Shown: piece by piece, positions 2,627 through 64,000 of the stretch
Layout: every line of letters starts with the position of its first letter
How positions within the stretch are numbered: position 1 is the stretch's first letter
DNA from: Piromyces finnis finn
Lineage: Eukaryota; Fungi; Neocallimastigomycota
Reading direction: 5' to 3'
Length of the DNA stretch: 64,000 nt
Assembly: GCA_002104945.1 (NCBI GenBank)
Contig: MCFH01000004.1
Span: 558,001-622,000, forward strand
The notes under the pieces: generated by a model
Told to the model about the DNA's origin: nothing
Database searches by the model: none
The model's input: the letters and a program-made list of their open reading frames with translations, nothing else
Translations under genes and position numbers: made by a program

Positions 2627-3160
2627 ATGACGTTTTAATTAATAAAGTTTCATAATACAAAGAATTCTTTTTTTTTTTTTTTTTTTTTTTTAAATACATA
2701 TATTTATTAATTCTTTGTACAAAAATAACCAAGTCAAAGTATTATTTTTGATTAATAGGATCAGAAATTTTAAACAATAAAATATATATAAAAAAAATAT
2801 AATATATATATAATGTAAATGAATATTTCTTTATAAATTAATATATATATTTTAAATTTTATTGGCATAAAGTTTTATATAAATTATATTATTTATAAAT
2901 AATAAAAACTTGAATATTTTCAAAAAAAAAAAAAAAAAAAAAAACTTCTTCTATTTGTATCATTTAAATATGCTTTGTATATAACTTTAAATTATATAAA
3001 GTCTTTCTATAATTAACGTTTTTTAATTATTATAATATTTTATTTTTACAATTTTAATTATAAAAGAGAAAAAAATAAATAAATAAATAAATAAAATAAT
3101 ATTATAAGAGATTTTTTATTTTATAAAAATGCAAATATGTACATGTAAATGTTTTTTTTA

Positions 3161-61210: not shown

Positions 61211-62139
61211 ACATAGATAAAATTAAAGCAATTAAAAAATAGTTATATTTTCTTTACATAAAAATACTAATAAATTTTAACTCTATTTCTTTGAACTTTT
61301 TGTCTACTTAATATATTATTATTTAAACAATAATAGTCATAATAACAATAATAATAATAATATAATATTTTATTAAATCATGATGCTTTATTTTTAATTA
61401 TTATTATAATTAAAAGATTGTATTTAAAAAAAAAAAAAAAAAAAAATTAGAAATACAGATAATATTAAAAAATATATAAATTTATTATTAGTTCTTCATC
61501 ATAATATTTATAAAATATATATTTTAAAAATAAAAATAAAAAAAAAAAAGTATAAGCCTATAACTTTTTTGTAAAATAAAAAAAAAAAAAAAAAAAATAT
61601 GCTAATTAATTAATATTGCTTTTTTTTTTTTAACCCATTTATTTAATATTCTTGAAAAAAAAAAAAAAAAGTTGTTAATGGTATAATACTATTTTCATTT
61701 TATTGTTAAATATAATAAAAATATATATTTAAATCATGGATATTGACCATATTTGATCTATAGATAATTTTTTTTTCCCTCTTAATTAGTAATGAAAATT
61801 TTATATTTTTTATTACTTATCACCACTATTTCTTATAAAAAAAAAAAAAAAAAAAAAGTCTTGATATATTATTAACTACCTCGAACATATCATTTGTTTT
61901 TTTTTTGTTTTTGTTTTTTTTTTTTTTTAGACTAAGAAGAGAATACACTTCTTCTTGTATTTATTTTGTGAAATTACATTATATTAGATGATAATACATA
62001 TTGATATAAATGAATAACAAATAAAAATAATAAAATATATTATATATAAATATAAAAGTTCAATAAATTCTGCAATTCGTATTGTGTGGAATGGTTCCCT
62101 ACCTAATAAATTAAATGAAATAAAAAAAAAAAAAAAGTA

Positions 62140-62780
62140 ACCTCAGGTAGGATAGTGTGATGTCCATTAAAATCTCCCTTGAACCTCCTAATGTTTTCGT
62201 TTGAAGAAATACAAACATTGAATCCTGTGTGTATGAAACATTAGGAATGTTCCTTCATCATATCAGTAAGATGTCGGTGCTCTTGATGACGTTAGGGTGT
62301 CATACGAAACCTATCAAAAAGTAGCTTCATTGAACTACTTACGATAAAGATTGTTTTAGTAAGAAAAGTCGCAAGACCCTCTACCTATGAAGCATGAGAC
62401 CCCAATGAACTTGTAAAGCGGTTCATTCAAATGCCTTTGTTCCGCCTTATTAATTTGTAGCTCATCCTAAAATTCCACCAAGAAGGAACATAAAACTATA
62501 GTTATAAATTGTTTTTTTCTTTACTTCCATTTCAGGGAGTAAGTAATGAATTGATGATTGTCTTTCTTGTGAAAAAGGGTAAAAAGATCGTCAAGAATGC
62601 AAAGTTCTGTATTTAGAAAATGTGCAGGACATTCTAAAATCCAATGATAAAAAAGATTGTTTATCCTATCCGCAACATGGACAGATACGAAGGTAGTCAG
62701 GTGTAACTCTATTACTGACAATAGCAGTTCTGATGAAAATAATTCCATCATCTTTTCATAACAAGGAAAAAGAATAAATT
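62140..62780 (-). mobile_element. Decayed non-LTR retrotransposon ORF2 C-terminus (CCHC zinc knuckle)
   Basis: With one stop and a 1-nt indel it reads RICPCCG*DKQSFYHWILECP (C-x2-C-x7-H-x4-C), followed by FLLGG. Locally GC-richer; multiple stops. Confidence 0.72.
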
Positions 62781-63317
62781 TCTTAAAAACAATAATTTAA
62801 AATAAAAAAACCAAAAGAAAATTTTAACAAGTTATTGAACTTTTATTACAGGGTCAATCGAATTCTATAAAGATTTAGAGTAACAACACCATATTATTCC
62901 ATACATGCCTTTACATTTTTATTTTAACAATAACTAATATTTTAAACATCATTATTAAATGCTTTACTTACATCCTTAACTTATATATTATTAAATATTA
63001 TAATATTTATAAAATTCCCAATTTTACATTTATCATCAACTATATTAAAAATAATTTTCAATATTTTTAAATGACATAAAATCAAACTTTTACATTTTAA
63101 CACACTCTAAAACTTCACAATTCAATATTTTTTTAATTTTCTTTTATTTATTTATAAAAACTTCTTACATTTTATTTTTCATTATACATATATTATATTT
63201 AATATTAAAATAAAACCAGCCATATTTACCTATAAAATATTAAATAATATTTTAATTAGCTATTAAAACTCATTTCAAAATATATATTTATAAAATGTTT
63301 TTTAAATATTATTATTA

Positions 63318-63393
63318 ATTTTCAGAATGGAAATTCATCTCATACTGTAATTCGAAATGAGCTGGGTTTAATAGCATAGTGTTTCATCATTTA
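63318..63393 (-). ncRNA. snR71: Box C/D snoRNA, snR71/U29-like (guide for 25S Am2946, yeast numbering)
   Basis: Box C ATGATGA 63390-63384; D' TCGA 63355-63352; C' ATGAGA; box D CTGA 63325-63322. A 13-nt antisense to 25S UGAGCUGGGUUUA; the 5th nt upstream of D' pairs with A2946. Flanked by a 20-bp perfect inverted repeat. Confidence 0.85.
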
Positions 63394-63586
63394 AATTAAT
63401 AATAATATTTAATAAACATTTGGTATTTTGTTCACTAAATTTACCTTTTATTTATTATTACAGTTACTATATTTTAATTTTGGTTAATATCTACATTCCA
63501 CCAAAGTTAATCTAAATTATAAAAATACATCACTTTTAGTAAACCCATTAAGTTTTATAATATATAATATATTAATAAAATTTAAT

Positions 63587-63672
63587 CATTTCAGAATGAA
63601 CATATACGATCTCATTAAAACCTTTGTTTTCGAAGAGCTGGGTTTAGAAAAAGCATGTATTTCATCATTTAA
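63587..63672 (-). ncRNA. snR69: Box C/D snoRNA, snR69-like (guide for 25S Cm2948)
   Basis: Box C 63668-63662; D' TCGA 63633-63630; C' ATGAGA; box D 63594-63591. A 14-nt antisense to GAGCUGGGUUUAGA; the 5th nt upstream of D' pairs with C2948. Flanked by a 15-bp perfect inverted repeat. Confidence 0.85.
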
Positions 63673-63741
63673 TGATTAAATTTTAATTTCAAAAAATATT
63701 GATAATTACCTTTCTTCCATTTTTATGGATAATTTTAATTT

Positions 63742-63877
63742 TTATGTCAAATTCACAGTAAATATATAAATAATTATAGAATAATTTATATTATTACTGT
63801 AAATTTATTTGCTTTCGTCTAAATAAAAATTGAAACATCACATGGAAATTGAAATGTCACAGAGTGTATTAGACATA
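63742..63877 (-). ncRNA. Box H/ACA snoRNA, snR80-like (guide for 18S Psi759)
   Basis: Hairpin 1 lower stem GTCTAA/TTAGAC; H box AAAGCA 63815-63810; hairpin 2 AAATTTACAGTAA/TTACTGTGAATTT; ACA at 63747-63745 plus 3 nt. Pocket strands CACTCT and TTTTT fit 18S AAAAA-UU-AGAGUG, 14 nt from the H box. Confidence 0.75.
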
Positions 63878-63983
63878 ATACAAATTTTTGTTTGTTTCTA
63901 AATAAAATAATACTTTATAAAATAATAATATAAAATTAATATCCATATTTATATTTTATAATATTATTAAACGGTTATCTTTT

Positions 63984-64000
63984 ATTGTCAGATACCGTCG
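63984..64000 (-). ncRNA. 3' end of a box C/D snoRNA, snR79-like (18S Cm1007), truncated by the window edge
   Basis: Minus strand CGACGGTAT-CTGA is antisense to 18S UCAGAUACCGUCG; the 5th nt upstream of box D pairs with C1007. Box C lies outside the window. Confidence 0.65.

Follow-up and report, generated by a model that had tools for sequence, protein, structure and literature searches.

Near the end of the window analysed here (a 64,000-nt stretch of the Piromyces finnis genome, contig MCFH01000004.1), the minus strand encodes two small RNAs, A and B, whose antisense elements face the same stretch of large subunit (LSU) rRNA. The question raised by this locus is whether two guides for neighbouring rRNA nucleotides descend from a single gene and, if so, how the targets of the two copies came to differ. 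Our preferred reading, to which we assign a probability of about 0.65, identifies A and B as the P. finnis snR69 and U29/snR71 guides, encoded side by side in introns, and regards them as old tandem duplicates whose guides have slid by 2 nt relative to one another. The features of the two RNAs are as follows.

63578..63681, minus strand: snoRNA A including its terminal stem, snR69-type (boxes, antisense element, 11-bp stem); putative guide for LSU Cm3091 (yeast Cm2948)
63668-63591, minus strand: snoRNA A, box C through box D
63668-63662, minus strand: box C of A, ATGATGA
63635..63648, minus strand: antisense element of A, TCTAAACCCAGCTC, followed by T and then D'; perfect complement of the genome's own LSU rRNA
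63633-63630, minus strand: D' of A, TCGA
63609..63615, minus strand: C' variant of A, ATGAGAT, read from the sequence; also present in B and in most metagenome snR69-type snoRNAs
63594-63591, minus strand: box D of A, CTGA
63305..63406, minus strand: snoRNA B including its terminal stem, U29/snR71-type (boxes, antisense element, 14-bp stem); putative guide for LSU Am3089 (yeast Am2946)
63390-63322, minus strand: snoRNA B, box C through box D
63390-63384, minus strand: box C of B, ATGATGA
63358..63370, minus strand: antisense element of B, TAAACCCAGCTCA, followed by TT and then D'; perfect complement of the genome's own LSU rRNA
63355-63352, minus strand: D' of B, TCGA
63337..63343, minus strand: C' variant of B, ATGAGAT, read from the sequence
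63325-63322, minus strand: box D of B, CTGA

Judged by sequence, A and B are box C/D snoRNAs, unannotated members of known families. Each has RUGAUGA near its 5' end, CUGA near its 3' end and a terminal stem, which comprises 11 bp in A and 14 bp in B in both the MFE and the centroid folds (fold z of -3.1 for B). Each also carries at least 10 nt of antisense to rRNA ending 1-3 nt before a D or D' box (14 nt in A, 13 nt in B), with a gap to TCGA of 1 nt in A and 2 nt in B. The two lie on the same strand at a start-to-start distance of 278 nt, and their alignment contains every motif that the initial annotation had listed as common to two C/D RNAs within 63302-63685 (ATGATGAAA.AC..ATGCT, TCGA, ATGAGAT and CATTCTGA).

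Targets were predicted on the rDNA unit of the same genome, in which the SSU, 5.8S and LSU were placed with Rfam. The antisense core TAAACCCAGCTC, directed at the genome's own LSU rRNA, is present in both RNAs; at the target this rRNA reads AACGTGAGCTGGGTTTAGACC, and the site sequence AACGTGAGCTGGGTTTAGACCGTC is the same in yeast. The element of A pairs perfectly over 14 nt with LSU 3088-3101, and that of B over 13 nt with LSU 3087-3099. We assigned UCGA as D' because it is the only tetramer adjoining either guide that retains the required GA. The fifth nucleotide upstream of D' is then G in A, opposite C3091, and T (U in the RNA) in B, opposite A3089. By alignment to the yeast sequence, C3091 corresponds to yeast C2948 (the snR69 site) and A3089 to yeast A2946 (the snR71/U29 site). 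Under the D'+5 rule, A is thus predicted to guide the equivalent of yeast C2948 through its D' box, as snR69 family members do, and B the equivalent of yeast A2946, as members of the SNORD29/snR71 family do, and A and B would methylate C3091 and A3089, respectively. The split targeting of A2946 and C2948 claimed in the initial annotation is reproduced by this analysis, and the two predicted targets are distinct nucleotides, 2 apart. Sites and guides are matched in the same way in published tables (PMC3511168, PMC8817022).

The same annotation had attributed the difference in targeting to a 2-nt indel between guide and D' box, and here the geometry of the two RNAs is informative. D' begins at nucleotide 36 in both, the length from box C to D' being equal, and the antisense core is placed 2 nt more 5' in B than in A, such that, relative to A, the spacer of B is 2 nt shorter and its guide-D' junction 2 nt longer. 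The difference is therefore a slide of the guide inside a frame of fixed length: the 2-nt change of register stands, and the net insertion does not.

In the mechanism that we envisage, A and B would each be released from its own intron of a single host transcript, apparently non-coding and with further snoRNAs in it, and the long terminal stem of each would join boxes C and D so that a snoRNP can assemble. In either case the antisense element before D' would pair with the same rRNA stretch, and fibrillarin would methylate whichever nucleotide lies opposite the fifth position before D', so that the 2-nt slide of the core would by itself shift the target from C to A. Because their binding sites overlap, the two snoRNPs would have to act in succession; yeast snR69 and snR71, which also have overlapping binding sites, differ in their dependence on Dbp3 (PMC8053091).

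At gathering thresholds, Rfam returned no matches across the whole window, and the pair was detected in E-value mode (2-kb scan). A scores 36.9 bits against snosnR69 (RF00475; gathering threshold 50; E = 0.0045), a model built from Saccharomycetes, and B scores 27.2 bits against SNORD29 (RF00070; gathering threshold 48; E = 0.078), each being the top match to its model in the 56-Mb genome. The yeast snR71 model (RF00479) did not match B at E up to 10, nor did it match A, and neither RNA was matched by the plant snoR69Y model (RF01198). Across the genome (56.46 Mb in 232 contigs, about 20% GC), the 10-mer AACCCAGCTC occurs at 22 sites, of which five are in rDNA and two are A and B themselves; the other 15 are coding or lack boxes and were ruled out as further guide copies. 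As all remaining occurrences are thus rDNA, coding or boxless, A and B are the only guides of this genome for the LSU stretch. Weak Rfam matches to snR71 and snR69 elsewhere in the genome were also ruled out, as they carry no such guide. At one non-coding site (L009; G000:C2:466625-466935, minus strand), TAAACCCAGCTCT includes 13 nt identical to the guide of A with no recognisable C, D' or D box, and represents either a chance occurrence or a decayed copy.

We looked for the locus in a related fungus by searching with the last exon of the upstream NDR kinase gene, taken as a single exon. This exon is 93% identical on JGI metagenome contigs of 16-19% GC, on which the kinase and Gti1/Pac2 neighbours are the same as here; the search returned only this one close relative, the next matches (62% and 59%) coming from other fungi with 48% GC and without synteny. 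The relative (L076) keeps A and B in tandem, 291 nt apart. Counting the stems, A is identical at 104/104 positions and B at 97/102 (95%), compared with about 55% identity in the sequence between them and 23-33% in the outer flanks, and two of the five differences in B are the two halves of a compensatory T-A to C-G exchange in its stem (63398/63316). Conservation so far above that of the flanks offers indirect support for A and B being real snoRNAs that are stably expressed and bound by fibrillarin, Nop56, Nop58 and Snu13. It also argues against a recent split between them, since the two differ from one another at many positions yet are both frozen between the two species.

These observations make it very improbable that only one of the two RNAs is functional, or that both guide the same nucleotide through a misassigned D' box. 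Such a view could appeal to the deviation of UCGA from the CUGA consensus and to the Neurospora crassa U29-type guide CD27, a single antisense element which its authors suggested could serve both sites (PMC2780460). However, no other GA tetramer lies beside either guide, UCGA is the general D' box of snR69-type genes, and the 1-nt and 3-nt junctions of A and B match those of snR69-type and U29-type genes elsewhere, quite apart from the conservation of both RNAs and the compensatory change in the stem of B.

To judge how A and B are related outside the shared antisense core, we compared them with a small control set of six other C/D snoRNAs of this genome: the neighbour in the same cluster (64062-63985) and five from a second cluster (L093; G000:C167:1297400-1299800, plus strand; same contig, about 0.68 Mb past the window), the latter located through antisense patterns for conserved sites. 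With the guides deleted, A and B score 25, with 88% of the shorter sequence matched, which is the best of the 28 pairs among these eight snoRNAs; the runner-up scores 16 (71%), and the other 27 pairs have a mean of 5.8 (sd 5.1). Likeness outside the guide therefore exceeds that between unrelated snoRNAs of the genome, at rank 1/28 with a small control set. When only the three spacers of A and B are compared, the excess over random AT-rich sequence is modest (p = 0.016 for global alignment, 0.09 with free ends). A further common trait is the D'/C' pair UCGA/AUGAGAU, found in A and B and in 0/6 control snoRNAs; in the annotated boxes of N. crassa, D' UCGA occurs in about 1/33 and C' UGAGAU in 0 of about 20 (PMC2780460, supplement 1). 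We infer that this pair is a single co-varying K-loop variant, in which U1 of D' pairs with A5 of C' in place of C-G, and because the two boxes co-vary it counts as one character, which could be convergent.

An unlikely, though by no means negligible, explanation of these similarities is that A and B are orthologues of families independent by descent that share a host gene, their likeness arising from a common rRNA partner, snoRNP geometry and AT-richness. Separate guides for the two sites are known in yeast, Arabidopsis and Dictyostelium (PMC3511168, PMC8583080, PMC8817022), the snosnR69 and SNORD29 models each match only their own counterpart, the similarity of the spacers taken alone is weak, and snoRNA clusters often mix unrelated members, as the neighbour at 64062-63985 and the L093 cluster illustrate. 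Independence by descent nevertheless leaves A-B as a clear outlier among the 28 guide-removed pairs and requires a rare, co-varying D'/C' variant and an equal distance from box C to D' to have arisen in both. Nor did we find extra shared complementarity that would account for the common spacer motifs: a search of the shared spacers for complementarity to rRNA near the target, and for a second guide before box D, turned up nothing beyond weak duplexes of <=8 bp.

Most likely, then, the two RNAs are paralogues produced by tandem duplication, as the initial annotation had proposed from the sequence that they share beyond the guide, and its suggestion that the snR71/U29 and snR69 families have a common origin draws support from the guide-removed similarity together with the shared rare D'/C' variant. 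The duplication appears to have taken place before P. finnis and its relative diverged, and probably very long before; the snoRNA sequences themselves are too short for phylogeny.

Comparison with known guides places A among snR69 genes (RF00475; also Afu_304, RF01511, and plant snoR69Y, RF01198), with which it shares the antisense core, a 1-nt junction to D' UCGA, a UGAGA-type C' box and the predicted target (yeast Cm2948). It differs from the snR69 of Dikarya in having no hairpin after box C (a 10-nt gap in the alignment), and it is probably intron-encoded, in a multi-snoRNA host, with an 11-bp external stem. B corresponds to SNORD29/U29 and yeast snR71 (RF00070, RF00479): as in plant U29, its antisense ends in CCCAGCTCATT and the junction is 3 nt long, and its predicted target is the same, yeast Am2946 being human Am4493 (PMC3511168). 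Plant U29 reads CCCAGCTCATT followed by ATGA (D' AUGA), so that the junction CTCATT is identical in B, whereas the D' box of B is UCGA. CD27 of N. crassa, directed at the same rRNA stretch, reads CCCAGCUCACU followed by CAGA with C' UGCUGA, where B has UCGA/AUGAGAU; and whereas a single gene has been proposed for both sites in that fungus, there are two dedicated genes here with guides 2 nt apart. B thus looks snR69-like in its body and U29-like at its junction, and as other U29-type snoRNAs have other D'/C' boxes, those of B may have been acquired by gene conversion or replacement instead of being inherited directly.

To these we can add related guides from metagenomes. A pattern scan returned 47 loci, mostly Dikarya-like and snR69-type, from a pattern that forced D' to be TCGA and was therefore biased against other U29-type genes; no anaerobic-fungus contig is among the 47. 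About 20 distinct snR69-type sequences have a 1-nt junction, G or T before TCGA, and C' UGAGA followed by U, A or C, so that a UCGA/UGAGA-type D'/C' signature marks these snoRNAs. Most metagenome snR69-type genes have the hairpin after box C, which A and B lack, and in about 20 Dikarya-like contigs no second antisense core or U29-type neighbour lies beside the snR69-type gene. L069, an intronic gene from a soil fungus, is U29-type, yet its boxes are UCGA and AUGAGAU and snosnR69 is the Rfam model that matches it best.

The mixed character of B is the starting point for another history, in which B arose recently and within this lineage from a fungal snR69-type gene by a 2-nt slide, the ancestral U29/snR71 gene being lost. 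The snR69-type UCGA and AUGAGAT boxes of B, its possession of the motif GCTATTAAACCC of yeast-like snR69 genes (L045, L030), the different D'/C' boxes of N. crassa and plant U29, the failure of the yeast snR71 model to match B and the lack of any other A3089 guide in the genome would all fit, as would L069, in which a U29-type guide likewise sits on an snR69-like body. We nonetheless consider a recent replacement rather improbable, given how widely A and B differ while both are frozen between two related species, and given that B shares its CTCATT junction with plant U29 and is ranked first in the genome by the SNORD29 model; its direction and date, moreover, are beyond what about 30 informative bases can give. 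More speculatively, snR69-type and U29-type guides might interconvert repeatedly, with a 2-nt slide in a fixed C-D' frame occurring more than once and the new gene then replacing the older one. This is a tentative idea to which we attach a low probability; under it, B and L069 would both be replacements, U29-type guides on snR69-type bodies.

An old tandem duplication, which we prefer, accords with what is known of the two guides elsewhere. Yeast, Arabidopsis and Dictyostelium each have separate guides for the two methylations (PMC3511168, PMC8053127, PMC8583080, PMC8817022), which makes the split an old one, and the locus described here is no record of a guide coming into being. Of the initial claim that duplication had generated a second guide for the peptidyl-transferase centre, then, tandem paralogy is supported, and the creation of the second guide is not demonstrated here, the guides being already separate in other eukaryotes. 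Kinship between snR69 and U29 is already implied by Rfam clan CL00051, which unites SNORD29, snR71, snR69 and snoR69Y with U36/snR47 (PMC3511168), and by the naming of plant clusters (PMC5122169). Arabidopsis C/D genes are numbered by chromosomal order, and on chromosome 1 snoR53Y and snoR25 are followed by U29 as number 38 and snoR69Y as number 39 (At1gCDbox38.1/39.1; PMC8583080); a monocot cluster has the order snoR53Y-U29a-U29b (PMC5122169). From these published tables and cluster names, plants too appear to keep both guide types side by side, as here, although the plant clusters are polycistrons and the P. finnis genes appear to be intronic. The stretch before box D of A (63595-63608, minus strand) has a 9-mer, TATGTTCAT, in common with the sequence before box D of Brassica U29 (PMC5122169, supplement); it has no rRNA complement in P. 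finnis, and its presence in both may be a matter of chance or a relic.

The pair supplies putative guides, hitherto unannotated, for two conserved methylations of the peptidyl-transferase centre in an anaerobic gut fungus, a group for which we found no snoRNA survey in the literature. It is also a clean pair for studying the origin of methylation guides: antisense and frame are common to both members, the guides are offset by a 2-nt slide, the K-loop variant that they share is rare, and the genes are linked in tandem. Viewed alongside the plant cluster, the pair offers a hint that snR69 and U29 began long ago as tandem duplicates. The gain is incremental, because neither the idea of duplication with a guide shift nor the relatedness of the two families is new, both being found in published work and in the Rfam clan; the hint merits systematic comparison, but its evolutionary interest is modest and no new principle is involved.

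Two further features of the presumed host transcript and its snoRNA cluster, one running past the end of the window, are as follows.

63445..63512, minus strand: putative short non-coding exon between the introns of A and B, with boundaries TTTAG/ATTAAC and AAAAG/GTAAAT placed by eye
63985..64000, minus strand, continuing beyond the window as far as the equivalent of 64062 (L007 1-62): 3' part of an upstream C/D snoRNA, snR79-like

The boundaries of this exon follow splice-like signals, and exons are poorly conserved, the stretch between A and B being about 55% identical in the relative. The upstream snoRNA has box C GTGATGA, D' CTGA and C' ATGATTA and is about 100% conserved in the relative. 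Its D guide, CTACGACGGTAT followed by CTGA, is complementary to SSU 1006-1017 with C1010 as the predicted target, which we take to be the yeast C1007 site of snR79. Between it and A, an island at 63735-63880 (minus strand) stands out with 88-97% conservation against a background of about 55%; it has the features hairpin, AGACGA, hairpin and ACA, and is probably an H/ACA snoRNA. On the other side of the pair, a GC-richer block at 61930-63220 (minus strand) contains further C/D-like RNAs, one of which, at about 62150-62285, runs from ATGATGA to CACACTATCCTAC followed by CTGA and ends in a T-run. In L076 nothing corresponding to this block lies between B and the Gti1/Pac2 gene, which looks like either an insertion here or a loss in the relative. 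Past the end of the window and upstream of the snoRNA host gene lie two tandem NDR/AGC-type kinase genes (L007 1066-3507 and 6298-7850, minus strand). The five C/D snoRNAs of the L093 cluster include a U27/snR74-type (AGACAAGCATATGT followed by CTAA), a U35/snR73-type (TCACGACGGTCTA followed by ATGA) and an snR77-type member (AGCTGGAATTACCGG followed by CTGA).
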